From: Klebsormidium nitens
Lineage: Eukaryota; Plantae; Klebsormidiophyceae
Assembly: GCA_000708835.1 (NCBI GenBank)
Contig: DF237281.1
Location: 37,235-101,234 of the forward strand
DNA: 64,000 nucleotides
Direction of reading: 5' to 3'
Each line of letters begins with the position of its first letter. The stretch's first letter is position 1. The notes below the pieces were generated by a model, which saw only the letters and a program-made list of their open reading frames with translations, made no database searches and was not told the DNA's origin. Of the stretch, positions 15,801 to 54,253 are shown one piece after another. The translations under genes and the position numbers were made by a program.

Positions 15801-18800
15801 TAAGGGGAGATGGTCCCCTGCGATGCCGGAGTCGGGGGATCCCCCTCGGACCGGGTTTTTGAGTCACCGGGGACATAGACCGAGTACCGCTGGGAGTCCG
15901 GGGTTTTGGGCTCGTCCGGCACATAAACAGAGTAGCGCTGCGGCTGCTCTGGCAGCTCCGCAGGGGCGGGGCGCTGCGGTGGGGGGGTCGCAGCTGCCTT
16001 TTGTGAGTTGGAGCGAGAGTTGCGGCGTGACCTGCAGGCAAAGGAACGGGGGGGTCGAAGGACGCACGAGGGCACTTTTCACTGGCCGCTGAGATCCCGC
16101 TGAGAACTGTCTTGCTGAGGCAGATGACTTTTCACAGCATACGAGTGTTATCGAAAGCGCTGCGTTGTGGTTGCCAATCGATTTAGAGACGTGACGTTCG
16201 GCTGGGAGTTCTGACGTAACAAGTGGACGACTCTGCGGTGCAAGTGAGAGATGTACGCCACGAAAACTCCCAGCAGAGGCAGACTTTAAGAGAAGGGTGC
16301 TTAAAGTCAACCAACATGGAAGATGGAGACACGTATGGTACATGGCTTGTCCTGAGCGTGTGACCTTACAAACCCAGCCCCGAAAAAGTTCCTGTCCGGC
16401 AATTCTGTTAGAAGGCGGTTTCTGGTACCCCAGAAGCACGGTTTAGGAGTGGGTCCTCACCGGGATGCCTGCCGGACGTAAGCCCCCTCGTTCAGGTCTC
16501 GTAAGCTGCGCTGCTGCCCTAGGTGCTTTGCCTTTCGCTGCACACAAAACGGTGCAGGCATAAGAAAGAGAAGCAGATAGGAAAACCGACTTGCACACTC
16601 CAATCTTCATTTTTGCGAGCGCTACAGCCAGTCAAGCAATGCTTCTGGCGCATTATGAGGCGGTCATCAGTTTCACCCAAGGTTATTGCTTCTTGTAAGT
16701 GCAAACTTGAGGGGTCTTTCACGCATTGTGAAGGGTTATCGTTGGATGCTTTGCACTTCTTAATTGTGGTCTATCTATTGAAGGCACCTACTTGCATCCC
16801 AGCAGTCGAAACACACTGGAATCGATTTGGGCCATGACGGATGCCCCTTGGCAAATGCCCACCCCGTAGTGCGGTCACTGCCCCAATTCAATTAAGCCCA
16901 AAACCTGCTTGGAGGTGCCTGATGCTATTACTTCAAGCCATAAACGACCAGCCTTTGGAGACACTACGAAATCATAGCCTTTTCTGAACAGTGTTCGTTC
17001 CCGCGGATATGAGTGTCATACAGGTCTTCTGAAGAAAGACAGGCTCCTGCGGATCCTCATATTATCATATTCCTGCCTCACCCTCGCTTTCATGGCCTTC
17101 TTCTCCCGCTCTGCCTGCGCCAGCTCGGCCAGCGCCCACTCCCGCTTGAAGAAGTACGGGTCCGAATAGCGCCGCAGGGCACCGCCGTCCGAGGCCGTCC
17201 GGTCAAAGCGGTCCAGCATGTGGAGCGGTGGGGGGGGCTGCGCTTTCATATATGCTTCGCTGATGTAAGGGGGAAGCTCTGAGGATGTGAACAGGGTTTG
17301 GTCCTCATGGGGGCTGGAGTGCCACTTGAGCCCTGAAGGAAAGACAGGTAGAGGGTTGATGGGTTAGTCCGACGAACACCTTGGATAAAGGGTGCTAAAA
17401 GGTTCACTATACGTACCATGCATGTCAAGGTAGAATACAACAGCCGCTAAGCAAAGCTAAGTGGACTCCTTGGCTGGTTTATGGCTTGCATCGTGGTCTG
17501 CTGGTGTTTGAATCTTGAACCTACTGAACAAGACGCAATGGTTATGCCAGCCAGATGGATGTTTATGAAGAATGCAAGAGACAGAGAATGGTCAACAATT
17601 GTACCAGTTCCGCTTCTCATCCTGGCCCTGATAGCTGTAAATGAATCTTGAACAGATGCAACAGACCAATTGTGTCTGTGTCTCAAAGAGGATGTTTAAC
17701 ATGCGTGCGTCCTAGAGCAGATTGACCGTCTCAATGCACTCTTTTCTTCCATTGCCTACATTGCAGTTTTTTCCGCTCTCAGACCCGCTCCAAGCACCCA
17801 GCCATCTTCCGTTTACTTGTTTGCCCACTCGATGTAAGCATGACCTTGCTTCGCCCCAAGAAGAAGCACACCGTATCAAACACTTAACTCAGGTATCCAT
17901 CTCTTGACTTGTTTGCGGCTTTTCCCTCTCAGCGGCTCCTTTATCCAGGAGTCTGTCAAACTTCTACTGGTGGCTACGTGTGCTTTCTTACCGTCATTTG
18001 GAAGTAGCTGCCGTGTGTCCTGCGCAGTGAAGACGCGGATCTCCGCCTCCGGCATGCTCTCCTCTAGCGCACTCGCGCGCGCCGCCATGGCCTCACCGCG
18101 TGCCCCGAGTCGAGACGTTTCAGCATGGAGCTGGGAGAACATGACGGCGGCATAGCTGCAAAAAAGGGGAAACAAAGGGTTAATGTTTGGGCAAAAGAAA
18201 GGGTACTCACCACTTCCAATGCAGTGGCAAAGATGTGTTTGTTGGCATGAGGTAAAAAGTGTTAAGGTGAGGAAGGATGGCGCCATGCAATCGGGTGCAG
18301 ATACATGCAATTCATGTCATTAGGACAAGGGCTGAAACAAAGTGTGGGTAAAAGTGACCCTCGCGTGCTGCATTCATTTACGAACAACGCAGAGTGTGCA
18401 TCAATTGACAAGTTAGCAGCCCATTGAGTTTGCATTTTAACAACAGAAACTCAAGGGAACCCCGTAGAACCATACTCTTTCAGCGGAAGCCAGACGAGAG
18501 GGAAACTGGCTGTACAAGCGCAAGACAAAACATCACCAAAAAGTGTATTTCTGCAGCCGTCTCCAAAGACCAAAGGACCTCCATGTGCAGCGTGGAGTCA
18601 CGTCCAGATCTGAACATAGAAACCAAGCAACTAGTTGGGACCAACATTCAGACACTCACTCGGACAGCTCCCCCAGCTGCCGCACAACTCCCACGAGGTC
18701 CGCAAAGTTGGCTGCTTCCAATAGCGCCCGGGGATCATCCTTCGGAGCCTGACGGTATATATCCGGCAAGGCAAGTGCCTGCTCCTCCTTCAGCCTCAGC

Positions 18801-31695: not shown

Positions 31696-31979
31696 TGGAG
31701 CTGGCGGGACTCGAACCCGCATCTCCCAGCCGGTCCAGCACCCCGGGCCCACCCGACCGCACGGAGCATCCTCGGGGCTGTATTGGCCCCGGGGGGGTGT
31801 TGCTGGGTTAATTGACGGCTCCCCCGGGGACCCGAGCACAGTGTGTCTGTGCTCAACCCTATGGGTGAACTTTCCGCCCCCCTTGGCTTCCAGAAAATGG
31901 ATCCAACCACTCCCGGAACGTTCCCCGGCCCCTCCATCTGGCGGGCGGTTCGGCGCTCTGCCGATTGAGCTACAGCCCC
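31696..31979 (-). ncRNA. tRNA-framed ncRNA copy 1 (284 nt, Ala-type acceptor stem)
   Basis: Minus strand: GGGGCTG TA GCTC AATCGGCA GAGC G [insert] GAGAT GCGGG TTCGAGT CCCGC CAGCTCC A. T4 follows within ~5 nt. TTTATAAA at -38..-31 and CCCACA at -69. Confidence 0.8.
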
Positions 31980-33490
31980 TTCGATATTGGTAACGTGCTT
32001 GGACTTGAGTTTATAAACGACACGGTTTGCATCTGCGCTGCCTGTGGGTCGACTTGGAGTCGGCCACCTGGACCTTTGGATGAGGCGCTTGAACGGTGAC
32101 GATCCCTCGATGGTTTGAACAAACTCACATCTGCTCGTATCTGTTGGCACTAATCAGCATCGTTGCTCGTTATTTCGTAAGGCTTTCAAGAAACGTATGC
32201 ATGGGGGGGTCTGCTTGCAAGACAGTCTGGCTCTGTCAACTTGATCATACACGCGTGCTGCTTTTACGCCTCCAGAAGACTGGCTAAATTATTCACCTTT
32301 CTCGCAGAGACTGAGTACATTCAGAGCTAATTTACTTATAAAGCTGGATAAATGATATAAAGCCCTTTGGTCCTCGGCTCTGATACTTGAACAAAAATAA
32401 AATTAAAGAAGTGGAAGTCGCTCCTGAAGGACTGACAAAGGGCTTTGTTGCGCTTCATTCCTAACCCGTCCCTGTCTTTACATCATCTTTCAAAGAGAGA
32501 GCAAGTGGCCACTTTTCAGGGTGGGTTTTCAATCTGAGGCAAACGTGCAAGCTGATTGGAAAGCCGAGAATGAGTTCCGCAGATTTAAAAAAACACTTTC
32601 AACATATGTTGGATTCAATACGTTGTGTGCCCACCATCCACAAAACAAGCCACCCAATAGAAAGGAAGCACGTTTGGAAACGTGGCGCAGTCTTCATAAA
32701 AAACAAACCGGCCTTTGAGCACTCTGGTTCTTCTAGTAAGCACCAGGACCCATGTCAAAGATGTGACGAACACTATAAACGAAGGGCCTTCCTCTAGACG
32801 TTCTGCCGACAGTCGCGAGTATCACTTCAGGGCCTGCAATGTTTGCTCCCAGCCCTTGGCACCTCTCACTCTCGCAGTTAGCCGGGTGAATCATCTACAG
32901 TAAGTGAGGACTTAAAGCGACTCTCAATTGCTACGCTGTACATCTAATTTGGTGAAAGCCCTGCGCAAGCGGGAATCTCCAAGTAGAGCTGTGCAACGTG
33001 TCCAAGACTTTGAACGAGTTAAAATCATGAAGGCCAAACTTCTCGATACCATTGTCTTCTTTGAACATTGAGTTAGCAGCACCCTGCGCACAACACTCTG
33101 GAGCAAAGCGCTCGAGCTCACAATAACGGCTTTTGAAGAGCTTCTCTGGTTGGCTGTCACGCTTTCAGGCCCGTCTTTGTCATGTAGCTAGCAGACGGAT
33201 CTCGGGGATCTGTGGGAGAAATTTGTTACGTCAATCTCACGACGGGCTTCTATCAACTACTTCAACTTCTTTAGGGATGGCTACATTAGTCAAGCCGGTG
33301 AAAGTGGACAACACTGGTCAAACGTATTTGCCCTTGCCAAACTCGACGCCTTGGACCGTTTACGTATTCGTTACTTCGTCATTCTTCAATGCTCAGGCCG
33401 CATCCTCGTCCTCGTTTGAGTTTTTGAAACAACAAAAAGATTTGTTGTAAGTATCAAAGTCCTGCAGCAACCGTGCAGGAGAAAAGGAAA

Positions 33491-33678
33491 CGGCGCTGAC
33501 GGGACTCGAACCCGCATCTCAGCCGGCCAGCGCCAGAGTCAGCGCGATACGCAGCTCGTAACGTCGCGCCGCAGTCGCAGAATCCGGCACACCTCCCCGG
33601 CGCGCAGCGCAGCCATTAGCAGTGGAACCCCCTCCGAGCGCAGGTGTTCTGGCGCTCTGCCGATTGAGCTACATCGCT
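33491..33678 (-). ncRNA. tRNA-framed ncRNA copy 2 (188 nt, subfamily A)
   Basis: AGCGATG TAGCTCAATCGGCAGAGCG CCAGA ... TCTGGCGC ... GAGAT GCGGGTTCGAGTCCCGT CAGCGCC G, then TTTCCTTTT. Two mismatches in the acceptor stem. CCCACA at -69. Confidence 0.72.
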
Positions 33679-34911
33679 GCCTTGTGCGAGAATTGTATCT
33701 TAAAGTGCTTATTACGCTGCCGTTCTCGAGGTTTCGATTTTTGTGGGTATTGCTTCGAAGATCGTCGAACGGTCGCGAGGCGATCGATGGCTAATCCGAA
33801 GCCTGAGGTCTGCGGCCCCCTTCGATGATTTTCCGCTCTGGCTGCAGTAGCCTTGATACCACATCCAACTAGTGCGAATCATTAAAGTCAAGTAGTAAGC
33901 CAAATTCGGGCAGCCGTGAGAACGAAATTTCAAGAAAGCGTTTGAAAAGTGATGGCGCTCTGGAGCGAAGCAAAGGGAGAACATAAACAGCGGGGCCAGC
34001 GTATGAGTGGCAAAGAGCCATTCCTTCGAAAAGTAAACACTTCGAAGGAAGTTTGAAGGAGCTGTTACACGAGCATCAGTCGATGCCAGGTGTCGTCACG
34101 GAGAGTCTTCGGCGTTCTGTGAGCCGTCAGCCGGGTGCCTTTCGCCGTTGAAGCGCATTGATGGTCACAAGAGAGAACCTCATTGATTTGTTAACGACCC
34201 GTCTTTTCAAATGTCGAAAGACGAGGAATGGCAAAAACAAGGCAACTCTCGCTACTTATCGAAGACCTCACTTACCAACTGATCACTTGGTACTTGCATA
34301 AAAAGAAGACTGCTGCTTACGAAGTGGTCGAATCGAGAGGTTTTGTGTTGCTTATTGATGCCACGGCGCTAGATCATGCGGCGCGACATTGAAGAGGTCT
34401 TCAAAGGCGAAGTCCAACCTGGCCGCGGCTTGCTTGTCAAAATCCCAGCTTATGTCAAGGTTGCCAGAGAAAAGCAGAAAACAAGTCTCAAAGGTACCGG
34501 TCGTGTAATCTATGTAAGCGTGTCTTATCAAATTCGAGGAGTGTCCTGGACGTGTCTCTTGGTTTGTAAATGGTTCAATCTACTGTGGGCTGCAGCTGCG
34601 CCTGGAGTGGAGGTAGTAAAGAACGAGAATGGTAGCTACAATAGCTGACACCTCTAAGTCACCTGGACTTGGAAGTGCTAGAGCCGGTTTCTCTACGTCG
34701 ATCCACCCGCGTTGAACACCAGAAAGTTACCCTGAAACTCAACGCCTTTTGCATCTCCAAAGTTCTAATAACTTCCTCTTCTCGCAGCAACGCTCACGAT
34801 TTGTTCCCCTCCTCCCTTAATTAAGCCGCCAAATAATCGAAAGGAGGGTTCAAACTTCAGACGAATCAATTGTAGCCTTTCATGCAGAGGTGCTGGCAAA
34901 AGTACTTCGGC

Positions 34912-35105
34912 GCGCGCTGGCGGGACTCGAACCCGCATCTCTCAGCCGGCCAGCACCAGGCGACGCCCGTTGTCGCTTGAGTGCAATACGTGACGCCGGA
35001 TTGTGCAGAATGCGGCACACTGTTCAGCGGAATTCTCCAGCCCGGCAGTGAAACCCCCGCCGGTCGCGGGGCATTCTGGCGCTCTACCGATTGAGCTACA
35101 GCGAC
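34912..35105 (-). ncRNA. tRNA-framed ncRNA copy 3 (194 nt, subfamily A)
   Basis: GTCGCTG TAGCTCAATCGGTAGAGCG ... GAGAT GCGGGTTCGAGTCCCGC CAGCGCG. The top two acceptor pairs are mismatched. T4 downstream, TTAATAAG near -35, CCCACA at -71. Confidence 0.72.
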
Positions 35106-37316
35106 GCCATTTGTGGGAATGGATGCATCATCAAACGCTTATTAACCTGCCATTGTCGGCGCTTCGATTTTGTGGGTACAGGCGTTCATGACCGGTGTTA
35201 GACCATCGAACGGTCGCGAAGCGACGGCTCCAAAGCCGGAGGTTTGACGCCGACTGAAATGGTTTTCCGCTCTGGCTGCGGTAGCCTCGATACCCGACAA
35301 GTAGTAAGCGGTTTCACGCAGCCGTTGATCAAGAAGTTCCGAAGAAGCGTTCGTGAAATAATTGCACTGTGGAGCCAAGATTGGGTTTAATGACAGCCAG
35401 CCCTGCTCATCATGGCAAGAGCCGTTGATTAAACGTCGGAGACTTTGGCGCAGATACGCAGGAGGCGCTAATAGGAGCGTACTACAATATCAATTGTCAC
35501 GAGGAGTCTCCGTGAATGTCCGTTCTGTCCCTGCGATCCCCATGCATCCAGGTGCCTGTCTCCGTTGAGGCGTAGTGAACGTCTACGGGGGCCACAATTA
35601 TCCTTGTTGACAAGTTGACGACGGCCGTCTAGTTTGCAGATGCCAAATGAATGAGTTAGAGCAAGGCAAAGGCGACGCTCGCCTGTGGCAGGTAAGTACT
35701 GTAGTGACCAGACTGCAAACCTCCTGCAAAGTGCCGCAGCCTTACCATGAGACAGATTGGCGTAGGGTCTAACGCATCAGACGGTAGCTTACAGATGACG
35801 GACGTCAATGTTCAAATCCACAAATGGGCTGCACCCCACTGGATGACACTTTTACTTTCTGCTCGCCCATTTCGGGCAACTGGTCTGAATGCTCAGTGAT
35901 TGGCTACTTCAATACAATGAAATGCAGCGTCAGACCTCGTTTTGGACTCCTTCGAGCTTCGTCCTATGAAGCGTGGGTTGAAACGAAATTTACCTATGCA
36001 ACTGGGCTGACACCTGTCCCTTTGATTCGTAAGATTTTGAGAACCGCGCGCCGGGTTCTTTCTATTTCTCCCTTTGCAGATGTTCGACTTGCGATATGAA
36101 TGTCCAGGAGTAGAATGCTCTCTGTGTGCTACTTATTCAGGGTTCGCTGCTTTTCTTATCATTCCATTTACCTGAGCACAGACGAATCTCTAAAGGCGCG
36201 CAAGCATTGTTGTCAAGCGGCGATCTCGGCGGCCAGCGCCCAAGCAACATCACCATATCTATGTGTTGATAGATAAGTCCCAATTACTTCACCCAGAAGT
36301 ACCGTCGACGACAGAGAATCTCCTTAACTATGTGCGGGCGACATTATCCAGATGATCTGGAGCGGCACGTTGTTTAACGGCGACGATGGTGGGTTATCGT
36401 TAGGAGAACGGGCTCTGGCACTTCAATCTATGGTAAGTAATGGGAACTTATGTCTCCTAAAACTTTCTAGAATTTCGTCGTTCGCCTTAGCAGGTGTTGC
36501 CAGCAAGACTTCGATTACGAGAGTTGGTTTCTTATCCAATTCACGTCACGTCCAGGACAATCCTCGAAATTGGTCAGACAATCGTACTTGGAGTAACTTC
36601 GAGACTTTATTCATGACTTTCCTCTCTGCGGCCAACTTGGATTAAGCCAGGCTTAAAGACAAGCAAGCAGCGGCCAACTTCAGCTTCTCATTTGAGGATC
36701 TTTCGAGTACAAGGCCGCAAAGATCTCGCACCCTAGCATCATTGAGCAGATCAAGTCCTCCAAGACCTGTACGTTTTCAAATGTAGCTACCCAGTGATCA
36801 GGTGAAAAGAGGTCGTACGTCTTCGGTAAAAATGCGAGCGTCGCCTTAGCCTTGCTTTTTCTCGTTCAATTAGCACTTGCAAACTAAACGGCCGTTGTCA
36901 ACCAGTCAACAAGGATAATTGTGGCCCCCGTAAACATTCACTACGCTTCAACGGAGAAAGGCACCTGGATACAGGGGGCTCGCAGGGACAGAACGGACAT
37001 TTACGGAGACTCCCCGTCACGATCTATATTGTGGTACGCTCCTATCGCGCTCCTTCGTATCTCCGCCGAAGTCTCCGATCTTCAAAGCAACGGCTCTTGC
37101 CATGATGAGCAAAGCTAGCTGTTATTGTACCCCCTCTTGGCTCTACAGCGCAATTCTTTCAAGAGCGCTTCTTTGGAACTTCGCGAATCAACGGCTGCGT
37201 GAAATTGCTTACTACTTGTCGGGTTTCGAGGCTACCGCAGCCAGAGCGGAAGATCATTTATCAGTCAGCGGCAGAACTCAGGCTTCGGAGCCGTCGCTTC
37301 GCACCGTTCCACGCAG

Positions 37317-37386
37317 TTCGACGGTCTAGATTCGCCAAGTGCCTCCACCCACAAAGTCGAGGCGCCGACAACGGCAGCTTCATAAG
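37317..37386 (+). promoter_or_regulatory. Upstream Pol III-type promoter of copy 4, representative of the family: TTCGACGGT (-101), CCCACA USE-like (-70), TATA-like (-39..-32)
   Basis: The same three motifs recur at matching distances in most copies, including the diverged copies 6 and 8 whose flanks are otherwise unalignable by eye. Confidence 0.6.
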
Positions 37387-37417
37387 CACTTGACGTACGA
37401 ATTCTGGCCTTAATGGC

Positions 37418-37614
37418 GGCGCTGTAGCTCAATCGGTAGAGCGCCAGAGCACCCGCGCCGGGAGGTGGTTCCACTGCCGGGCTGGAGTATTCCGCTGAAC
37501 AGTGTGCCGCATTCTGCACAATCCGGCGCCACGTGTCGCGCTCAAGCGCGAAGAAAGCGGGCGTCGCCTGGTGCTGGCGGCTGAGAGATGCGGGTTCGAG
37601 TCCCGTCAGCGCCA
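37418..37614 (+). ncRNA. tRNA-framed ncRNA copy 4 (197 nt, subfamily A)
   Basis: GGCGCTG TA GCTC AATCGGTA GAGC G ... GAGAT GCGGG TTCGAGT CCCGT CAGCGCC A, with a perfect 7-bp acceptor stem. CCCACA at 37348 (-70) and TTCATAAG near -35. Only T3 plus a hairpin downstream. Confidence 0.78.
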
Positions 37615-38882
37615 AGATCCCTTTGCCAGCACCTCTGCTGGAGACCTATACTTGATTCAATTGAAACGACGGCTCAAGTGAGGACGGAAAGGAAGCGTGA
37701 GCGTTGCAGACTGAAAGAGAACTTAATGGGAAGCTGGAGCCTGTCAAAGCCTTTAAGTCTGAGGGTGATTTATGGTGTTCAACAAGGTTGAATCAACGTA
37801 AGGGAGCTTGCTTTGGCACTTAAAGTCCTGGTAAACCAGAGGCGTCAGCTAGCTACCGTTCTCGTTTTGTCCTACCTCCGCTTCCGCAGCTGCTGCCATG
37901 CAAGACTTCTTTCACAATGGGGTTGATTATACAAAAGGCCACGAGAAAAGTTTAGGACACCCCTCGAAGTTGGTAAGACACTCTTTTCGTAGAGTAAGAA
38001 GATTACTTTTATTTCCTTCCGAGACATGTTCCCCAACGGGTTTCCTTGTGGCAACTCTGATATAAGATGGGAACCTGACAAGCAAGCAGCGGCCAAGTTG
38101 GACTTCGTATCTGAAGACCCCTCCGAAGTCGCGCCGCATGATCTAAGGTCGTAGCATCATTGATCAGCAAATCACAAATATTACAAGACCTTTTCACTTT
38201 TAGCAGTCCTTATAAATTATGCAGGTAACCAGTGGTCAGATGGTAAGTGAGGTTTCGGTCAAGTAGCGAAAGTTGCCCAACTCCGCCATATCTCGTTCCT
38301 TTAACATTAGAAAAGACGGGTCTTCTCGACAGGTCATTGAGTATTATTGCGGCCTCCATATCCATTTTAGGCTTTAAGGGGGAATGGCATCTGGCTGACA
38401 GCTCGCGGAGGCAGAACGTACATCCACCTTAAAGACTTTTCGTCACGATAAATGGCATCAACCGACCGCTCATATCAGCGCTCTTTCATTATTCCGCTCA
38501 TATCATCTGATCTTACAAACAGTTGGGTCTGTGCCACCTGTGGGTCGGCCCGGCTGTAGTAGTGTCCCCCCCCTCTCTCCAGAGGGGCACTACTGTACAA
38601 GCGCTTGCTTCGAAGTTCGTAGTCGACGGCTGCCTGATGTGGCTTACTACTGTACCTGAGTCTCAACTCACACTAGCTGGTTGCGGGTATCGAAGCCACG
38701 GCAGCCAGGTGCCATTTGCAAAGAGAAAAAACAAAATCTCAGTTGGTCGTCGAGGCTTTGGAGCCGTCGCTTCGCGACCATTCGACGGTCTCGTATCGAT
38801 CAGCGCCTCGACCCACAAAACCGAAGCTTCGTAAACGGCAGCTTTTTAAGCAGTTGATGGTACGTTCTCTCGCATGAAAAGC

Positions 38883-39082
38883 GGCGATGTAGCTCAATTG
38901 GCAGAGCGCCAGAACGCCCGCGCCCGGAGGGGGTTCCACTGCTGATGGCTGCGCTGCGCGCCGGGGAGTGTGCCGGATTCTGCGAATGCGGCGCGACGTT
39001 ACGAGCTGCGTATCGCGCTGAGTGTTCGCGTCGTGTGGCGCTGGCCGGCTGAAAGATGCGGGTTCGAGTCCCGTCAGCGCCG
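38883..39082 (+). ncRNA. tRNA-framed ncRNA copy 5 (200 nt, subfamily A)
   Basis: GGCGATG TAGCTCAATTGGCAGAGCG ... AAGAT GCGGGTTCGAGTCCCGT CAGCGCC G, then ATCACTTTTT. CCCACA at 38812 (-71) and TTTTAAG near -35. Confidence 0.78.
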
Positions 39083-39347
39083 ATCACTTTTTCGCAAGGA
39101 CGGCAACTAAAGGACTTCAGTTCTTACAGAGACATTCTAGTTTTGGAAATCGAAGAGTTCGAAGGATTCAGTAAGCGCTGACAAGACTCAGCGTCCTTCG
39201 CTGTCCAGCAACCCAAAACGGTTGGATTGTGACGTTGAGTCCTCAGAAGGTGGATGTACGTTCAGTCGCTGCGAGCCGTGCCTTTTCCCCTTGTCATATG
39301 CACATTGATTATCACGACCGCAATTATCCATGATGACCAGCTAAAAG

Positions 39348-39379
39348 GACAAGTTGACAAGTTGACAAGTCGACAAGTA
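39348..39379. repeat. Short tandem repeat (GACAAGTN)x4
   Basis: gacaagtt gacaagtt gacaagtc gacaagta. The paralogous flank at ~35607 has about 1.5 units. Confidence 0.85.
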
Positions 39380-40877
39380 TTTGATAACGGCCGTCCAGCT
39401 GTCTGCAAGTGCCAAAGGTCGGACAAGGTGTAGCAAGGTCAAGGCGACTCTCGCTATTCAAGCGAAGACGTGTAACTCCACTTACAATCTGATCTCTGGG
39501 TATACGTAGTTCCATACATGTCAGAATACTAAAAACGAAAAGGTCTTGAAGGACTTGATCTGCTCAACGATGCTAGGGGCGGCAAATTAGCGTTTCGATC
39601 CTAGCATCAACGAACTACATATATCTGAAGTTGATCATAGAGATCTTCAGATGAGCGATTTGATTTGGCCGCTGCTTGCTCCTCTCAAAGCCCAGCTCTA
39701 TTCAGTTAAGGTTGCCACAGATTCTTGAGGGATGTGAAACATGATCTCTCGCAGGGCTTATAAGGTCCGCTTACTCTACGCAAGACAGTTTTACCAACTT
39801 TCAGGGTTGACTCGTCGCTTGAATATGATTCAAACCGACTGTAGAAATCAAAGTTTTGCGGGCAGCAAGTGCGAAAGTAAAGGGCGAAAAGAGCGATCGG
39901 AAAGGTTGCTACCTCTAATTTCGTTTCTATAGGAAATGTCAGAGCACGGTTACGGTGCTAGCCGTCAAATGTGCCGCGCCTGAACACATGGATCACTTCG
40001 TCCGTTCGTTTCGATAAAGTAGTTCTGTCTTCGCGCATCGTCGGCTGGACTGTATGCAACTTGTCAGATCACCACCCGATGATGCTTGGCTGGCCGCTAA
40101 AATTGCCTCTTGGATAGAAATGCGTGCACTTTTTTAAAACTCTTCGTACTAAGAGACGGGTTGCCTTGAGCCAGAGCTCGATCAAGGCAACGAACTACCC
40201 AAAATCAACTGCATAGCAGCATTCAAACCCATCCCGAGGTGGACTTTCCATTCAATATAGAACACCTTTGCAAAGAGTTCAAGTGGACGACATGAAATAC
40301 GCGCTAACCTGAAGACGTTCTGGATCATTGATATGACTGTCAACCCAGTTGAGTTAGCTAGTAATCGTACTCAGAAGCTATACTTGGTAGCTGGGGAGAT
40401 CCGACCACTCCTAAAGTGGGTCTGATGATTGTCGTCGGAAGTAGGTCATTGAGTACGAGTACTCAGACTTGGACAAATTGTCTAGCATAAGTAGAAATGG
40501 TTATCCAGTCGGGTGCCCACTTCGTGGGATTTAAATAGGGCCCGGCACCTCGAAGCTACTGGTGCATCAGATCCTGCGCCAACTTTCTCCAAACAAATTA
40601 AGACCGCGGCACCTCGAAGATAGGCTGTCTGATTACTGGTACCCCAAAGCCAGAGTCAAGCTGATGCAAGGTTCGCAGTATGACGACTTTGCCAGAAGCA
40701 CCCCACGTGACGTGAGTCGCCCATCACGGTGTTAAACAGGTAACACACATTTCGTCTTTTGTGGGAAATAATCAAAAGCAGCCAGACACCTGCCCAACAA
40801 CAAAAGGTGGCGAGTACCAGTCGTCGACTGGTGTTGAATCTATGTCCTAAATTGAACTGATAAAAAGTTGGCGGCAG

Positions 40878-41087
40878 TGGAGCTGGCGGGGTTCGAACCC
40901 GCATCTCTCAGCCCAGGAACTCCCGGTCTCTTGCCAGCGTCCTCCGGTCTCGCCCCCTAGCCGCAGCGCAGTGCCCTGCTTGCCCGGGGAATGTGCTCGG
41001 CGCGGGACTCTTCGAGACGGCGCAGATTTTCGCGCACGCGATCCGGGGTCTTTCAAATTGGCGCTCTGCCAGTTGAGCTACAGCCCC
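40878..41087 (-). ncRNA. tRNA-framed ncRNA copy 6 (210 nt, Ala-type acceptor stem)
   Basis: GGGGCTG TA GCTC AACTGGCA GAGC G ... GAGAT GCGGG TTCGAAC CCCGC CAGCTCC A, with T5 about 11 nt downstream. AATATATAT at -42..-34 and CCCACA at -73. Confidence 0.8.
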
Positions 41088-42283
41088 TGCTCGATAAATG
41101 GCACCGGGCGGTAAATTGCGATATATATTCCGCGGATAATCTGAAGTCATCAGTTGTGGGTCCCGTCAGAAGTGGACCGTCGATGGCGCCGCGGACGGTG
41201 CCGATGGAGCGAAACCTGGCGGACTCGGCGGCGGCCGCGCGGCATCGATTTTAAAAATCTCGGCGCAGGTTGGCTGCAGGCTAAGGCGAGGCCGCACTTC
41301 CACAAAAGCCGCGCATTGGCAGAGACCATGAAATTACTGAAACGATTGTCGCCCCTAGCATGCAAAGCCAGCTGTGAGAGTGTACCCGCGTTCAGTGATC
41401 GAGAACTGCATCGTTGCACGATTTCATTTTCCACCCTCAATGCATCCGTTGATCAGAAGTTACCCTGAAATACCTCATATACCGGACAAACAGTTAGAGA
41501 AAGCCAAACTTGTTGTGTACGTAATCCAATCTCCTTTTCAACAGTGACGACGTGGTGATGCTACATCGATCATCTCTTCCTTGGGGGAAAATTGAACTAA
41601 AGAACACCATAGACTGATCCCATGATTGGCCATGCAGACCTAAACTTCAGCGTATGAACTAGGAAACTTTTGGTTTAGCGTTCTGTTGTTCTGCGCATGA
41701 GTTGGAAGCACATGGGCGCCGTACACGAAGATACTCAAAGCTTACAAGCTCTCTTGATCCAATCAAAAGTCGGACGAGCTTTCTGCTTTTTTGAGGGTCC
41801 CAGTTGGATGATGCTGCACCAGTGGTACAAGAATGTGACCCGGACTGACGGACTCCTAGCGATCCTAGCCGCGGAGTCGATCAAGCACACCGTCGCCAAA
41901 GCCGGTTGAGAAACCGTCAGCTTTTCAGTGGCCAGATACAATCATCAGAGGAACGGCTGGGCGCTCGCTCGAAAACAACGGCGCGCTGGCACCCTAGCCT
42001 TGTAAGGATTCGACTGTCAGGCCCAATGATCAGTGGCCATTTCGTGATTCCAGATTCCGGTCAGCTAGGCCCTCTCCAGAAGCGCCATACACAGCCCAAA
42101 AAGCTTTTCTCAAAATGGTAGACCGGCGGAAGGAATTAGAAGTAGTAGAGTAGGCTTCCAATGCTGTGTATCCCATCTGCATTTCCTTTTCCTTACAGGC
42201 CAGGTCATCACGGCAGCAGGCTAAGACGTGAGCTCGCTTGACCATTCTCAAGAACAGAAAAACCATCAGAAACTAAAAGATAC

Positions 42284-42564
42284 TGGACTCTGGCGGGACT
42301 CGAAACCCGCGTCTCCCAGCCGGCCGGCATTTGCGCTGCCCGGAGGTTGGAGGCCCCTCGGTGGCGCAAGCCCCGAGGAAGCCCCGGCTGACCTCGTGCA
42401 CCTCTCGGTGCAATTCTGGCCGGATACACAGGCGAAGCGCGGCCGCGCGCGGCTCGCAGCAAGCTCTCAGCAGGCTGTGGCTCCTCTTGGGGGATCCCTC
42501 CGTCCGAACCATGTTAACCATACGGCCGGAGGGTTCGGCGCTCTGCCCATCGAGATACAGCCCC
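42284..42564 (-). ncRNA. tRNA-framed ncRNA copy 7 (281 nt), degenerate and possibly a pseudogene
   Basis: GGGGCTG TATCTCGATGGGCAGAGCG ... GAGAC GCGGG TTTCGAGT CCCGC CAGAGTCC A. Mutated A box, extra T in the T-loop, insertion in the acceptor 3' strand, and no TATA at -35. T4 downstream is retained. Confidence 0.6.
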
Positions 42565-43940
42565 TGGAGATGAATATGATCCGAAGTATCGAAGCTTTCG
42601 ACCAGTTGTACTGTCGTTTGTGGGTTGTCGACTTTTGTGGATCAAGCTTACGTTTGCATGTTTGTAATCGTCGATCGATAGGTTGACGGATATGGGCGCT
42701 CCTGACGGAGCGTTGTTTGCTGGCAGGACTCATTCGCGTATCGCTTGCAGTTTTCGGCCGGACCCGTGTCGCGCAAGGTCTCGTACACCCCAGCACAAGC
42801 CGCCCTTTGCAAAAGATCCAAATCAAAGTCAGGCCATGAGACCGGCGCCAATTGCGACCGGTTGGCGCTCCTTTAATTGACGACAGCGTTTTCTCAGCGC
42901 ATGCAGTTCAGCACCCAAAGTGGGCACTTCGAGTTGATTTGAAGGAAGCAATCTTAGTAGACTTACTTGTAATTCAAAGTGCAGACGCTTCGAACCGTCT
43001 CTTACGTGTATGTAGACGCTAGATACTCGCTACGACCATCAAAAGGCTCGACCTCTGTTGCAAATCAGATGTGTCGGTACGTGAGGCTGACTTGATCGGT
43101 GCTTCGTCTTACTTTCTTTGGCAGAATGTTTCAAGCTGTTCTTGACCACAGATCGCAGTAGAGGACGATGATTTAAATATCTACCGAACCAGTGCAGGCG
43201 ATCAGCTGACTTGTTGGAAATTCGGGGATTCAATAGTACTGTCAGCCGTTGGAATCTCTTGGGCCAGAATCGAGTCCAGATCATCGTAATTCTCACGTGA
43301 AATTTTCGGGCTTCTGATTGCAATTCTAAATAACTTTAAACTTCTGTGCTCCTTCCGCCGGTAAAGCAAGCGCACTTGCACTAGGTGTTCGTTCTTCTGG
43401 TTCTCCAAGTTCTCCAAAAACTCCTTCCCGTTCTGAAGTTCGGAGGGATCTTGTACTTTCTCCCAGTACATGAAATTGCGGATACAATGAGAAGAGCAGA
43501 ATGCCGTTGCTACCAGTTTGGACATGTTCACCACGTCAACGGCTAGGGGCTCGCCAGATTAAAAATAATACCCCTCAGACCATGTCGCTATACCAGTCGC
43601 TGGTGCGGGGGTTGATCTTCTGTAAAGCTTGACGGGCGGTCCTCCTTTGGGGACCGCGCAATCTGCTAGAGCTAGGCAGAAATTTCATGGCCCCAATCCT
43701 GGGGAAACTCTGTCGGAAACCTCGGAGGTTGAGACCGCTTGTGAGAAATGCATTCTAGGGTTTCACACATAGGTTTTGTTTTTTCCAGCATTGAATAGCA
43801 ACCAGCCTGCGCGTGACCCGTTCGTACTTTATGAAGCAGAAATCGATTAGATTCTCACCTTTTCACTCGCTTCCAAAATGGCCTCCAACGGCATGTCCCG
43901 AACTTTGAAGGTAAGACTTCAGTTAAGACCAAAAAGTGGG

Positions 43941-44148
43941 TGGAGCTGGCGGGAGTCGAACCCGCATCTCCCAGCACCCGGGGGTGCTCAGCCAATGATC
44001 GGTAAGTGGCGCGGGTACTCAGTTAAACCGGAGCCCAGTTGAGCTCCGGGCACTCTCCCCTGGCTGCTCAAGGCAGAAAACTGAGGGACGGTCCTTCCTC
44101 CTCAGGCCACAGACCGCGCCGGCGCTTTGCCATTAAGCTACCACCCCC
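43941..44148 (-). ncRNA. tRNA-framed ncRNA copy 8 (~208 nt, Ala-type acceptor stem)
   Basis: GGGGGTGG TA GCTT AATGGCA AAGC G CCGGC [insert] GCTGG GAGAT GCGGG TTCGACT CCCGC CAGCTCC A, then CCCACTTTTT. TTTATTAT near -36 and CCCACC at -73. Confidence 0.78.
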
Positions 44149-45557: not shown

Positions 45558-47105
45558 TCAGTCGGAGAAAGTCGAGCTCGAGTCGTCCCACCCCACCAGG
45601 CAGAGAGACACCACATTGCCCACAGTCGCTACTCCGGCCTGTAGCAGCGCTATCGCAAACAAGCCGTAAGCTGCAGACTTGCCCAGCCAGAGACGCGAAC
45701 TAGACTGGGGCTTTGGGGGATCGTCCGGACTACCCGCCGGAGCCTGATCATGGCCCCCCTGTCCGTTTTTCCCGGCTTTCCTTTCGGATCTCCCATCAGC
45801 GCCTTGCCCATTTTGCTGAGCCTCGTCTCCTTCGCTTGCTTCGTCGCTTGACCCCGACCGTTCAGGAGACGACCGCGCAGCGTCTCTATCTTCATTGGCG
45901 TTCGGTCGTCTCCCCTCACCAGCTTGGCTGCGGCCTGGGCTAGATTCGTGCGCTTCTTTCGTGCCTTCCTCTCGCATCTCAAAAGCGTGGTTCTCAAACT
46001 TCCGCACTCCACTACCCCCGCCCTTCCGCTCCTTATCCAGCAGTTTCAAGAGCGCATACCCCGGCACAACCAGGTTTACAAAGCTCAGCACAATGCCGCC
46101 AGCCATCCCCTGCACAACGCCCAGGTTCTTGATGGCCACCGCAATCCCCAGGGAGCCGAGGAAAAAGAGGGTCGCAAAAAGAACAGCCCACTTTCGCTCC
46201 TCCGCTCGCTTGGGGCCCAGGACAAGGTAACCCAAATGCAGTCTCCCGATGATTACATTCAGCGGGAACACAACGACAACACTAGCGAGGGAAATGTAGA
46301 GGGCGGTGTATAGGGCGCCTGGCTTGTCCTCGTACAGGTTAAAGAAGTTGGCCTCTTGAGTTCCCGGATATTGAAGGTAGCCCAAGGTCCCAAAGCTGAC
46401 GTAGAGCAGCCCGCAGATTGAAAAGGAGATGTAGACTAATGCTTTGCCCTTGGCCAGACTGCGGTCGCGCATCTCCCGGTAAAGCGGAATGATCCCGGTT
46501 TGGCCCGCGAACTGCTGGATGGACAGGGCGAGCATTAGATCTGGGCTCCAGTTAGCTAGAACTACGTCATCGAGTGGTAACCCTTCCCCTACGGCGGTGT
46601 CAATAAATGTGTAGGTTAGGATAGCAAAGCCGGTTAAGGTGCACAGAACAGCGCCAAACGAAAGTTTGCTCAGGAACTGCAGCTTCTTGGTATAGATTAG
46701 AGGCCAGATCAGGACCGCCGCTCGGAGCAGGACAATCAGGGGCCGGTTAGGCATAAACCGGTGGGTTATCAGCCGGTGTTTGATGCTAACCGCAAAATCC
46801 CCCATCAGGATCAGGCGCTGGCAGCACGCAAACAACTCGCCCAACACGATGAAAGCGTCTAAGAGCTGCGCCCACCGAGTGCCCAACACTTTTTGGGTTA
46901 AGTCGTGGTAACTTTCCGGGGTGCCAAACTCCTCGGCTGCCTGGAGCATAACCGTGCAGGCAAAGGCGTTAACCAGGCCCAAACCGACCATGGACAAGGA
47001 GGAGAGGAGCAGGCCCATTTGGGTCGCGGTTAGCGGGGTGGTTATCCAGCCTGACCCAAAAAGGAGGCTGCAGAAGTTGAGGTGGTGCTGAGAAGGTACC
47101 AGCAT
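45558..47105 (-). CDS. Amino-acid transporter, Aa_trans (AAAP/SLC38-like) family, intronless, with an acidic/Gly-rich loop near the C-terminus
   Basis: About 11 hydrophobic segments. TM1 LLFGSGWITTPL..G, SYHDLTQKVLG, FAGQTGIIPLYREMRD, YVSFGTLGYLQY and VFPLNVIIGR follow the family pattern. Confidence 0.85.
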   Translation of the reverse strand: MLVPSQHHLNFCSLLFGSGWITTPLTATQMGLLLSSLSMVGLGLVNAFACTVMLQAAEEFGTPESYHDLTQKVLGTRWAQLLDAFIVLGELFACCQRLILMGDFAVSIKHRLITHRFMPNRPLIVLLRAAVLIWPLIYTKKLQFLSKLSFGAVLCTLTGFAILTYTFIDTAVGEGLPLDDVVLANWSPDLMLALSIQQFAGQTGIIPLYREMRDRSLAKGKALVYISFSICGLLYVSFGTLGYLQYPGTQEANFFNLYEDKPGALYTALYISLASVVVVFPLNVIIGRLHLGYLVLGPKRAEERKWAVLFATLFFLGSLGIAVAIKNLGVVQGMAGGIVLSFVNLVVPGYALLKLLDKERKGGGSGVRKFENHAFEMREEGTKEAHESSPGRSQAGEGRRPNANEDRDAARSSPERSGSSDEASEGDEAQQNGQGADGRSERKAGKNGQGGHDQAPAGSPDDPPKPQSSSRLWLGKSAAYGLFAIALLQAGVATVGNVVSLCLVGWDDSSSTFSD

Positions 47106-53274: not shown

Positions 53275-54253
53275 ACCGAAGACCTCACTTACCATCTGAG
53301 CATTGGCTACTTGCATACCGTATATCAGGACTGCTGAAACGGAGCTTTCAAAGTATCTCCCTCTTAATTATTGACGCTACTGCTTTTTATCATGCGGCAT
53401 TGAAGAGTCGTCAGATACGAAGTCCAACTTGACCGCGGTTAGCTTGTCAGACTCCCAGCTTATATCAAGGTTACCACGTTAAGGAAGCCAGTCGGGGAAC
53501 ACGTCTCGAAAGGAATCTCGAAGGTGATCTTTTACTCTGCGACAGACTGCCTTACCAACTTCGAGGGGTATCCTAGACGTGACTCGTGGCTTGTGAATGA
53601 TTAAACCCATTGTGAAAAAGAAGTCTTGCATGGCAGCAGCTGCTGGATAGGAGGTAGGAAAAAAGGAGAACGCTGGCTAGCTGACGCCTCTGATATAATA
53701 GGACTGGAAGTGCCAAACCAGGATTCCTTTCGTTGATACACCCTCCTTGACCACCAGAGATCACCCTCAGACTGAGGGCTTTGACAGGCTCCAGCTTTCT
53801 ACTAAGTTCCTTTCAATCAGCAACGCTCGTGCTTCATCCCCGTTCTCACTTGAGCCGTCAAATCAAACGAAAGAGGGTTCAGACGAATCAAGTATACTTC
53901 TTTAGCAGAGGTGCTCGCAAAAGGTTTTCGGCGCTGGCGGGACTCGAACCCGCATCTCTCAGCCGCCAGCACCAGGCGACGCCCGTCTTCGCGCTCGAGC
54001 GCGACACGTGACGCCGGATTGCGCAGATGATGCGGCACACTGCCCGGCGGAAAACTCCAGCCACGCTGCGGAACCCCCTCTCGAGGCGGGGTGTTCTGGC
54101 GCTCTACCGATTGAGCTACAGCGCCGCCCTTCCAAACAAAATTTCTATCGTCAAGTGTTTATTAAGCTGCCGTTGTCGGGCGGCTCGATTTTGTGGGTTG
54201 AGGCGTTGACCGATGGTAGACCGTCGATTGGTACGAAACGACGGCTCCAAAGC
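53275..54253. repeat. Dispersed ~1 kb duplicate, in reverse complement, of ~37281-38260
   Basis: GACCGAAGACCTCACTTACCATCTGA at 53275 matches the reverse complement of 38235-38260. GAAGTCTTGCATGGCAGCAGCTGC matches 37886-37910. The ncRNA and its upstream motifs are included. Confidence 0.85.
53929..54125 (-). ncRNA. tRNA-framed ncRNA copy 9 (197 nt, subfamily A), dispersed copy
   Basis: GGCGCTG TAGCTCAATCGGTAGAGCG ... GAGAT GCGGGTTCGAGTCCCGC CAGCGCC G, then AAAACCTTTT. TTAATAAA at -39..-32 and CCCACA at -72. Confidence 0.8.

Follow-up and report, generated by a model that had tools for sequence, protein, structure and literature searches.

What should one call a gene that begins and ends like a tRNA and yet cannot be read as one? 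The question is raised here by a 64,000-nucleotide stretch of the Klebsormidium nitens nuclear genome (contig DF237281.1, hereafter the window), which hosts nine tRNA-framed units of 188-284 nt (Table 1). In each unit an acceptor strand and D-arm are followed by an insert of ~105-205 nt, a variable loop, a T-arm and the complementary acceptor strand. Are these tRNA genes, mobile elements, pseudogenes or something else?

A local array with a conserved tRNA shell

The existence of a nine-copy family, proposed in the initial annotation, is borne out by the motif counts. The D-arm motif has 8 matches in the window where 0.08 are expected, and the T-arm motif has 9 where 0.33 are expected, the match at 38683 being due to chance. 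We also ran the covariance-model search that the annotation had suggested, within the window, with separate models for the 5′ and 3′ halves of the shell, filters off and c7 excluded from training. Each model returns nine matches, all of them paired and with no orphans; c7 is recovered by both (E-values of 1e-6 and 4e-5), although it was absent from the training set.

Table 1. The nine tRNA-framed units in the window.
Copy	Position	Strand	Length (nt)	Subfamily	Pair 3:70, nucleotide 73	Shell, insert and location	Downstream T run (distance)
c1	31696-31979	-	284	B	G3:U70, A73	insert ~205 nt	T4 (5 nt)
c2	33491-33678	-	188	A	C3:G70	acceptor mismatches 1:72 and 5:68	T4 (6 nt)
c3	34912-35105	-	194	A		two mismatches, acceptor-stem end	T4 (11 nt)
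c4	37418-37614	+	197	A		no mismatch	T3 only
c5	38883-39082	+	200	A		one acceptor mismatch, A5.G68, common to c2	T5 (6 nt)
c6	40878-41087	-	210	B	G3:U70, A73	no mismatch	T5 (12 nt)
c7	42285-42564	-	280	B		degenerate
c8	43941-44147	-	207	B	G3:U70, A73	one acceptor mismatch, 6:67; D-stem pair U13:A22	T5 (6 nt)
c9	53929-54125	-	197	A		no mismatch; ~10 kb from main cluster	T4 (7 nt)

Conservation of the shell extends over the acceptor stem, the D-arm, the T-arm and the anticodon-stem base. Copies that cannot be aligned in their inserts and flanks are still 83-93% identical in the shell. All shell pairs are intact in c1 (acceptor GGGGCUG/CAGCUCC), c4, c6 and c9, and for these the claim that every copy has a complementary acceptor strand holds in full; it does not do so for c2 and c3, with two mismatches, for c5 and c8, with one each, or for c7, in which the stem is broken. 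Some pairs have changed on both sides: 3:70 is G:U in subfamily B versus C:G in subfamily A, C13:G22 has become U13:A22 in c8, and, read directly off the sequences, 29:41 alternates between A-U and G-C. Each of these compensated pairs represents one event only. Copy c7 is decaying: G10 has changed to U, which breaks the D stem, the T loop carries an additional U and the 3′ acceptor strand is mutated. Together with the acceptor mismatches in c2, c3, c5 and c8, this decay shows that constraint on the shell is incomplete.

The copies are arranged locally, in tandem or inverted. The neighbouring gene encodes an amino-acid transporter, 100% identical to a K. nitens protein, and in two related algal contigs that carry the transporter orthologue no copy adjoins it.

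The hallmark of SINEs is a head related to tRNA and carrying A and B boxes, and the family could in principle be a mobile element of tRNA origin, SINE-like or MITE-like, with variable bodies carried along as it spreads. However, no target-site duplications of at least 8 nt surround any of the nine copies. The copies lack a poly-A, simple-repeat or LINE-type tail and end in the 3′ half of a tRNA followed by a terminator. The type B copies have the shell alone in common, and the subfamily A copies spread by segmental duplications of ~1 kb that include flanking sequence and lie ~1.4 kb apart (c9 is located inside one copy of this unit). The upstream promoter boxes described below would not be expected on retroposed copies either. 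We therefore agree with the annotation that these are not classic SINEs, and regard any mobile-element origin as very improbable.

Polymerase III signals and GC-rich inserts

The reading of these units as Pol III-type genes is supported by several predicted signals. The units contain an internal A box and a perfect B box. A run of T4-T5 begins 5-12 nt downstream in eight of the nine copies, inside the ~20 nt first proposed, with c4 as the exception. Against a background chance of 8% per 25 nt for such a run, the binomial P is ~1e-8, a value that overstates independence, because the subfamily A copies are paralogues. Eight copies also have a TATA-like box ~30-40 nt upstream, the exception being c7. 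These boxes are present even in the mutually unrelated flanks of c1 (TTTATAAA, ~30-38 nt upstream), c6 (AATATATAT) and c8 (TTTATTAT).

The inserts tell a different story from the shell. High GC is the only property that they have in common: it is 63-70% in all nine, compared with 47-53% in the flanks, an excess of ~15-20 points over the neighbourhood. Type B inserts show no alignable similarity (47-50% identity, against 49% for the null), so it is the shell and not the cargo that is conserved. The c6 insert is unrelated to all others. Apart from the c2/c5 pair, which is 94-96% identical, the subfamily A inserts are merely 5-7 points above the flanks in conservation. Folding the inserts reveals no extra stability relative to dinucleotide shuffles (z from -1.4 to +1.5), and RNAalifold, applied to subfamily A, returns a positive, unfavourable covariation term with only 3 double-sided pairs. 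In none of the frames do the copies have a common short ORF with a tag-like end, nor were common C/D or H/ACA boxes found by inspection. The description of the inserts as large, structured cargo domains is thus not upheld, since there is neither excess folding stability nor convincing covariation to support a cargo function.

Could this be a decaying array of tRNA-like pseudogenes, with the shell kept by gene conversion, or because its A and B boxes act at the DNA level, in TFIIIC binding or as a boundary element, and with a functionless RNA? The degenerate c7, the acceptor mismatches, the lack of a structural signal in the inserts and the small margin by which most subfamily A inserts exceed their flanks in conservation would fit. 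Among streptophyte algae, PlantRNA also lists many sequences as 'tRNA-like/pseudogene' (10.1101/2021.12.21.473619). On 37350-43300, four K. nitens RNA-seq assemblies show no contig, save for a 35-nt match from another locus, and offer no support for the stable ncRNAs of the annotation, but this silence is weak evidence, because the libraries and assemblies are probably of mRNA type. Against decay, the acceptor strands, which lie outside the A and B boxes, are still complementary although flanks and inserts have been randomized. The double-sided change at 3:70, the compensated D-stem pair, and the terminators and TATA-like boxes retained in unrelated flanks argue the same way, as does the GC excess of the inserts, which neutral decay would erase. 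We consider a functionless array unlikely, if worth keeping in mind.

The anticodon arm and probable descent from tRNA-Ala

As the annotation had recommended, we searched the window with ARAGORN, which in default mode reports no tRNA and no tmRNA. When rerun with introns of up to 400 nt, including a fixed 37/38 mode, it calls eight of the nine copies, with inconsistent isotypes. In fixed 37/38 mode c1 (CGC), c3 (UGC) and c5 (CGC) all read as Ala, which for c1 matches an Ala-type acceptor, and c4 and c9 read CAC at the homologous position, one transition from an Ala triplet. Read off the sequences, the anticodon stem keeps 3-5 bp at its base in all copies and leads, as in pre-tRNAs, into an internal loop and then another helix. 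Approximately 34% of K. nitens tRNA genes bear introns (PMC13578239). The relic Ala triplets in c1, c3 and c5 point to probable descent from an intron-bearing tRNA-Ala gene, an origin that the initial annotation had not taken into account.

These observations, and the intron-like evolution of the inserts, would also suit true tRNA genes, mostly tRNA-Ala(CGC/UGC), whose very long introns are removed by splicing endonuclease and ligase to give a decoding tRNA. Genome annotation would have overlooked such genes because tRNA finders cap intron length. However, in the best intron-mode models nucleotide 26 is missing, U33 is replaced by A or C, and position 37 has C instead of a purine. Near-identical paralogues receive clashing isotypes, and so do single copies in different modes (c4 is Pro or Val, c1 is Gln or Ala); c6 and c8 would pair an alanine acceptor identity with anticodons for Ser, Phe or Pro. 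Neither a bulge-helix-bulge motif nor an A-I pair was found by inspection. The GC-rich inserts of ~105-205 nt are several times the ~64 nt termed 'unusually long' among algal tRNA introns in reviews, which for most streptophyte algae describe canonical introns only (PMC13578239). Spliced, decoding tRNAs are consequently an improbable explanation, in line with the original view that no standard anticodon arm can be rebuilt and that these are not ordinary tRNAs.

Related systems and a proposed reading

Rfam and literature searches returned no described family that matches, and the family appears to be undescribed, as the initial annotation held. In the Rfam comparison c4, alone among the copies, exceeds the tRNA threshold (RF00005, 43.6 bits); the alignment runs end to end, and a 133-nt insertion falls exactly at the anticodon loop.

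Several known systems are nevertheless similar in part. Intron-bearing pre-tRNAs include those of Drosophila tRNA-Tyr, whose introns yield circular tricRNAs, and archaeal tRNA-Trp, whose intron hosts a C/D box sRNA. They share with our units a Pol III type 2 architecture, conserved exons and a fast-evolving interruption at the anticodon loop, with the stem base leading through an internal loop to a further helix. Unlike them, the K. nitens units give no canonical 7-nt loop when the insert is removed, their anticodon disagrees with the acceptor identity, and they have no common boxes of the archaeal kind. BC1 RNA and the rodent ID elements are likewise a lineage-specific Pol III family from tRNA-Ala with internal A and B boxes. 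In BC1 only the 5′ tRNA-related head is kept; it refolds as a hairpin, and downstream come an A-rich region and a unique tail, whereas the K. nitens units keep both tRNA halves around the extra sequence and show no signs of retroposition.

The tRNA-like 3′ elements of mascRNA/MALAT1 and MEN-beta (RF01684), and the MHV68 tRNA-miRNA chimeric transcripts, rely on tRNA-like modules to have a larger RNA processed by RNase P and RNase Z. The last ~45 nt of our units match RF01684 weakly (20-27 bits, where the gathering score is 42.5) and can pair as a minihelix with GG(U/C)GCUG, an internal repeat of the 5′ acceptor strand. Those modules, however, lie beside other RNA, whereas here the shell encloses the insert. 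The layout is identical to that of the engineered 'tRNA scaffold', in which the anticodon arm is swapped for an RNA of interest for recombinant expression, with acceptor stem, D-arm and T-arm intact and the foreign RNA on the anticodon stem. That is a laboratory design, and literature searches found no natural eukaryotic counterpart.

The comparison with tmRNA (bacterial and organellar ssrA, RF00023) deserves separate treatment. Here a large domain also stands in place of the anticodon arm, and subfamily B has the alanine-type acceptor (G3:U70 and A73), with a T-arm and 3′ acceptor strand that we take to be nearly identical to the 3′ end of E. coli tmRNA. With the Rfam tmRNA model, the tRNA-like domain aligns at an E-value of 3e-9. 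A nuclear-encoded analogue would be alanylated, enter stalled ribosomes, possibly organellar ones, and supply a tag frame. But bit scores are 14-31, under the gathering score of 47, and ARAGORN calls no tmRNA. The inserts are unrelated across copies, with no conserved body and no shared frame with a tag-like end, subfamily A lacks the alanine identity pair, and a full D-arm and Pol III signals are unlike tmRNA. Of the tmRNA-like layout first suggested, the analogy stands in architecture only; a functional analogue is close to refuted.

We propose instead that the nine units are a lineage-specific family of Pol III type that arose from tRNA-Ala, the ancestor probably having carried an intron, with selection on the shell and not on the cargo sequence. 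To this reading, drawn from sequence comparison, we assign a probability of roughly 0.5. The shell is conserved with compensated stem changes, while inserts and flanks have diverged to random. The array would be an old one, tandem or inverted, of Pol III type 2 genes, whose ancestor probably carried its intron after the anticodon, as numerous tRNA genes of K. nitens do. Expansion to ~105-205 GC-rich bases would then have taken place between the variable loop and the anticodon-stem base (27-30 with 40-43), with the loss of a usable anticodon loop. TFIIIC and TFIIIB may recruit polymerase III, and the T run would stop transcription. The transcript would be cut by RNase P and RNase Z at the acceptor/T-arm minihelix and then receive CCA. 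Subfamily B RNAs, with G3:U70 and A73, are predicted substrates of alanyl-tRNA synthetase, and those of subfamily A, with C3:G70, are not. Neither product would be able to decode codons normally. Because selection appears to act on the shell and to keep the insert GC-rich and closed by a helix, rather than to act on the insert sequence, the RNA would work through its tRNA-like body and not as a sequence-specific cargo; it might bind tRNA-handling proteins, for instance, or serve as a carrier.

Shell architecture and polymerase III signals

The units described here, c1 to c9, are tRNA-framed genes of the polymerase III type, and they are neither ordinary tRNAs nor SINEs. Each combines a shell (acceptor stem, D-arm, T-arm and the base of the anticodon stem) with an insert of about 105-205 nt that replaces the anticodon loop. 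We distinguish subfamily A (c2-c5 and c9) from subfamily B (c1, c6, c7 and c8). The transporter ORF is identical to a protein of the host species and other ORFs of the window carry plant-type domains (Agenet, F-box/LRR, DAO), therefore the window is nuclear DNA of the streptophyte alga K. nitens. The cluster region has about 50% GC and the coding parts 55-65%, and no Pfam domains were found in ORFs of the spacers between units. Three long intron-free ORFs (694-802 aa) are also present, one of them with an Agenet domain and two without a Pfam match.

Positions of the tRNA-framed units and of other features in the window
Feature	Position	Strand	Remark
c1	31696-31979	-	subfamily B
c2	33491-33678	-	subfamily A
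c3	34912-35105	-	subfamily A
c4	37418-37614	+	subfamily A
c5	38883-39082	+	subfamily A
c6	40878-41087	-	subfamily B
c7	42285-42564	-	subfamily B
c8	43941-44147	-	subfamily B
c9	53929-54125	-	subfamily A
c6 3' shell segment	40878-40912		35 nt, identical in an RNA contig
c7 insert	42336-42533
Site matching the c7 insert	62777-62794		18 nt, exact; antisense to the ORF in the next row
ORF	61458-63245		weak match to the CxC4 cysteine cluster of KDZ transposases
T-arm-like match	38683-38699		chance match, rejected as a family member
Amino-acid transporter ORF	45558-47105	-	515 aa, 100% identical to a Klebsormidium nitens protein
Long ORF	153-2327		intron-free
Long ORF	4777-6861		intron-free
Long ORF	13667-16075		intron-free

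The D-arm motif proposed in the initial annotation matches eight times in the window against an expectation of 0.08, and the T-arm motif nine times against 0.33, one of the latter being a chance match. Both counts are far over expectation. The 5' shell (36 nt) and the 3' shell (50 nt) were each modelled by covariance; searched unfiltered on both strands, the two models return exactly nine 5' halves and nine 3' halves, always paired, and recover c7, which had been left out of the training. The extracted sequences and the shell models thus agree with the earlier count of nine units of 188-284 nt and with the positions given for them.

The cloverleaf elements of a tRNA gene, that is the acceptor stem, D-arm and T-arm, are found across the units and are broken in c7. 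According to the pair tables all shell stems are paired in c1, c4, c6 and c9, while the acceptor stem has one mismatch each in c5 and c8 and two each in c2 and c3. The degenerate c7 has a broken D stem, an extra U in the T loop and a mutated acceptor 3' strand. In subfamily B the acceptor stem reads GGGGCUG/CAGCUCC and carries the alanine identity set, G3:U70 with A73; in subfamily A it reads GGCGCUG/CAGCGCC, with C3:G70, a double change at 3:70 that retains pairing. Further exchanges occur at 29:41 in the base of the anticodon stem (A-U in subfamily A and c6, G-C in c1, c7 and c8) and in the D stem of c8, where a compensated U13:A22 stands in place of C13:G22.

The family units have an A box, TAGCTCAAYYGG, and a B box, GGTTCGANNCC, which is intact in eight of the nine and has an extra T in c7. 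A run of T4-T5 starts 5-12 nt past the discriminator in 8/9 units, against a regional background of 8% of 25-nt windows with TTTT. These internal boxes and the downstream oligo-T are the sequence signals of a type 2 polymerase III gene, as had been claimed. A TATA-like box at about -30 to -40 accompanies eight units, including c1, c6 and c8 with their otherwise unrelated flanks, and is missing at c7. Plant nuclear tRNA genes typically have a TATA-like element upstream and a short T run downstream.

In the four K. nitens RNA assemblies searched, which come from different studies, 37350-43300 (c4-c7) is covered by no contig; assembled contigs of this kind, probably from mRNA-type libraries, seldom capture small structured RNAs, and their silence therefore says little. 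The stable ncRNAs proposed in the initial annotation find no support in these assemblies. The sole match, 35 nt identical to the 3' shell of c6, lies in a contig of about 800 nt from another locus. This contig is present in four K. nitens RNA runs at a high depth of 70-309 and extends some 750 nt beyond the discriminator with no T run; an abundant long transcript thus contains a family member from another locus.

Ordinary tRNAs, tmRNAs and SINEs as alternatives

Could these units be intron-bearing tRNAs? With default settings ARAGORN reports no tRNA genes in the window, and Rfam gives no matches at gathering thresholds with standard filters. With permissive filters c4 aligns end to end to RF00005 with a 133-nt insertion in the anticodon loop, scoring 43.6 bits against a gathering threshold of 29 bits, and the other copies reach at most 23 bits or give partial matches. 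When introns of up to 400 nt are allowed, ARAGORN calls eight of the nine units, and the isotypes given to these paralogues conflict: Gln, Gln, Ser, Pro, Ala, Ser, Ile and Pro with a free intron position, and Ala, Arg, Ala, Val, Ala, Ser, Pro and Val with the intron fixed at 37/38. In the intron models that it draws, N26 is missing, position 33 is A or C and position 37 is C. U33 and A37 occur together only in c6, and there with an imperfect stem and a non-alanine anticodon. A canonical decoding tRNA, with a 5-bp anticodon stem, a 7-nt loop, U33, a purine at 37 and N26 after intron removal, is not obtained from any copy. The default and the intron modes of ARAGORN thus uphold the view that no canonical anticodon arm can be rebuilt, and this failure, together with the isotype conflicts, that these are not ordinary tRNAs.

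A new detail lies in the triplets at the homologous anticodon position. They are alanine anticodons in c1 (CGC), c3 (UGC) and c5 (CGC), and CAC, one transition off an alanine triplet, in c4 and c9 (ARAGORN fixed mode) and in c2 (by reading of the sequence). The alanine-type triplets look like a relic of an intron-bearing tRNA-Ala ancestor. Only canonical 37/38 tRNA introns have been described in most streptophyte algae, about 34% of K. nitens tRNA genes bear introns, and a tRNA intron of about 64 nt in Ostreococcus was termed 'unusually long' (PMC13578239). PlantRNA 2.0 has a catch-all 'tRNA-like/pseudogene' class. Our literature search for a tRNA body enclosing an insert found no description of this layout; with the empty Rfam search at gathering thresholds and standard filters, this agrees with the initial annotation that no such family had been described, and the family appears to be undescribed.

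The likeness to bacterial tmRNA that had been suggested holds for the shape of the units but not for their content. The tRNA-like domain can be aligned, and it is of the tRNA-Ala type with G3:U70 (and A73) in c1, c6 and c8, subfamily A having C3:G70. Its alignment to RF00023 scores 14-31 bits against a threshold of 47, the inserts share no tag ORF in any frame, and the ARAGORN tmRNA search returned none. A tmRNA with a resume codon, a tag ORF and a conserved pseudoknotted body is made unlikely by the lack of a shared ORF, the unalignable bodies and the sub-threshold scores. A 3' module of the mascRNA type (RF01684) was also rejected, the 3' shells scoring 19.7-27.1 bits against a gathering threshold of 42.5.

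A tRNA-derived SINE would be expected to carry target-site duplications and a tail. Target-site duplications were not found, the longest word common to the upstream and downstream flanks being 0-7 nt. The units end in the tRNA 3' half followed by the T run, with no SINE-type tail (poly-A, simple repeat or LINE-derived). Dispersed copies alike over the whole element are not seen in the window either: subfamily B shares the shell only, and subfamily A consists of segmental duplicates that include the flanks. The absence of duplications and of a 3' tail supports the earlier view that these are not classic SINEs.

Evolution and folding of the inserts

Subfamily A units sit in segmental duplications of about 1 kb, tandem and inverted, spaced about 1.4 kb apart, with c9 a copy about 10 kb away from the array. 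Conservation of their inserts exceeds that of the flanks by a few points only. The pair c2 and c5 is an exception: here insert identity is 94-96%, against about 40-65% in the upstream flank, and the downstream flank cannot be aligned. This likeness could be due to gene conversion or to selection confined to the gene. The type B copies have nothing in common but the shell. Shell identity is 83-85% between the subfamilies and 84-93% within B; in these comparisons the inserts align at 47-50% identity, against 49% for a shuffled null. The GC content of the insert is 63-70% in all nine units and 47-53% in the surrounding 600 nt of each gene. No other copies of the inserts were found within the window. 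The 18-nt exact match between the c7 insert and a site antisense to a downstream ORF (see the table) may be due to chance.

The initial annotation saw the inserts as structured cargo, and our folding results do not support this. The inserts fold no better than dinucleotide shuffles (z from -1.4 to +1.5), whole-gene z-scores are unremarkable too, and RNAalifold on the five subfamily A copies gives a positive covariation term (+1.64) and only three double-sided pairs. A conserved GG(U/C)GCUG, a repeat of the 5' acceptor strand, directly precedes the variable loop. It could pair with the 3' acceptor strand (86% of cells, vs at most 53% with the partner slid); nucleotides 23-28 are an alternative partner, and covariation decides for neither. 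Two alternative folds, one a long helix joining the D region to the segment that precedes the T arm, the other a 3' minihelix through GG(U/C)GCUG, are possible on paper; covariation supports neither, 173/500 shuffles performing equally well. In c8 the U13:A22 change speaks for the D hairpin. No C/D or H/ACA boxes common to the copies were found by eye. We see selection on the shell and on the composition of the inserts, and none on their sequence or on a specific fold.

Metagenome matches to the 3' shell, all of them bacterial, comprise only tRNA-Ala(CGC) genes and two further sequences, a probable tmRNA end and an odd tRNA; they show no more than that the shell is alanine-type. In metagenome sequence L006 (747-774) a tRNA-Ala-like 3' end is followed by CCA, without an ARAGORN tRNA call, and probably derives from a bacterial tmRNA. 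In L008 (1209-1281) a tRNA has the same acceptor and T-arm, and ARAGORN gives it a 4-base anticodon (gcac) and an undetermined isotype. The family motif (GCUG, two purines, AGAU, T-arm) is absent in viral and prokaryotic genome collections. Two related algal contigs with an orthologue of the transporter (70% and 59% identity) hold neither copies nor synteny. In a sequencing-run index three further organisms hold 27-33% of the sampled c4 words.

Possible readings: a natural tRNA scaffold or giant introns

The most likely history is that a tRNA-Ala gene expanded greatly in its intron and anticodon-loop region while RNA-level selection kept the shell; a function is inferred. A bolder proposal, to which we give about one chance in four, is that K. 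nitens makes natural 'tRNA scaffold' RNAs. These would be transcribed by polymerase III and would have a complete, end-matured tRNA-Ala body (CCA-tailed and alanylated in subfamily B), with an interchangeable GC-rich domain for the anticodon loop, and they would draw on the tRNA processing, export or synthetase machinery. The domain might either stay in place or be freed by the tRNA splicing endonuclease as a linear or circular RNA. Such RNAs would have no described counterpart in a eukaryotic nucleus.

Should such RNAs exist, they would provide the first natural case in eukaryotes of a full tRNA body with a large foreign domain at the anticodon-loop site, a layout so far seen only in bacterial tmRNA (in part) and in laboratory 'tRNA scaffolds'. 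The alanine charging of anticodon-less bodies, their binding partners and the release of the insert by the tRNA splicing machinery would then become testable. Should the inserts prove to be giant introns, they would extend the size range known for nuclear tRNA introns about three-fold and expose a blind spot in tRNA annotation, where intron length is capped. On either reading, the array offers a clear example of a tRNA shell held by selection in surroundings that have been randomised.
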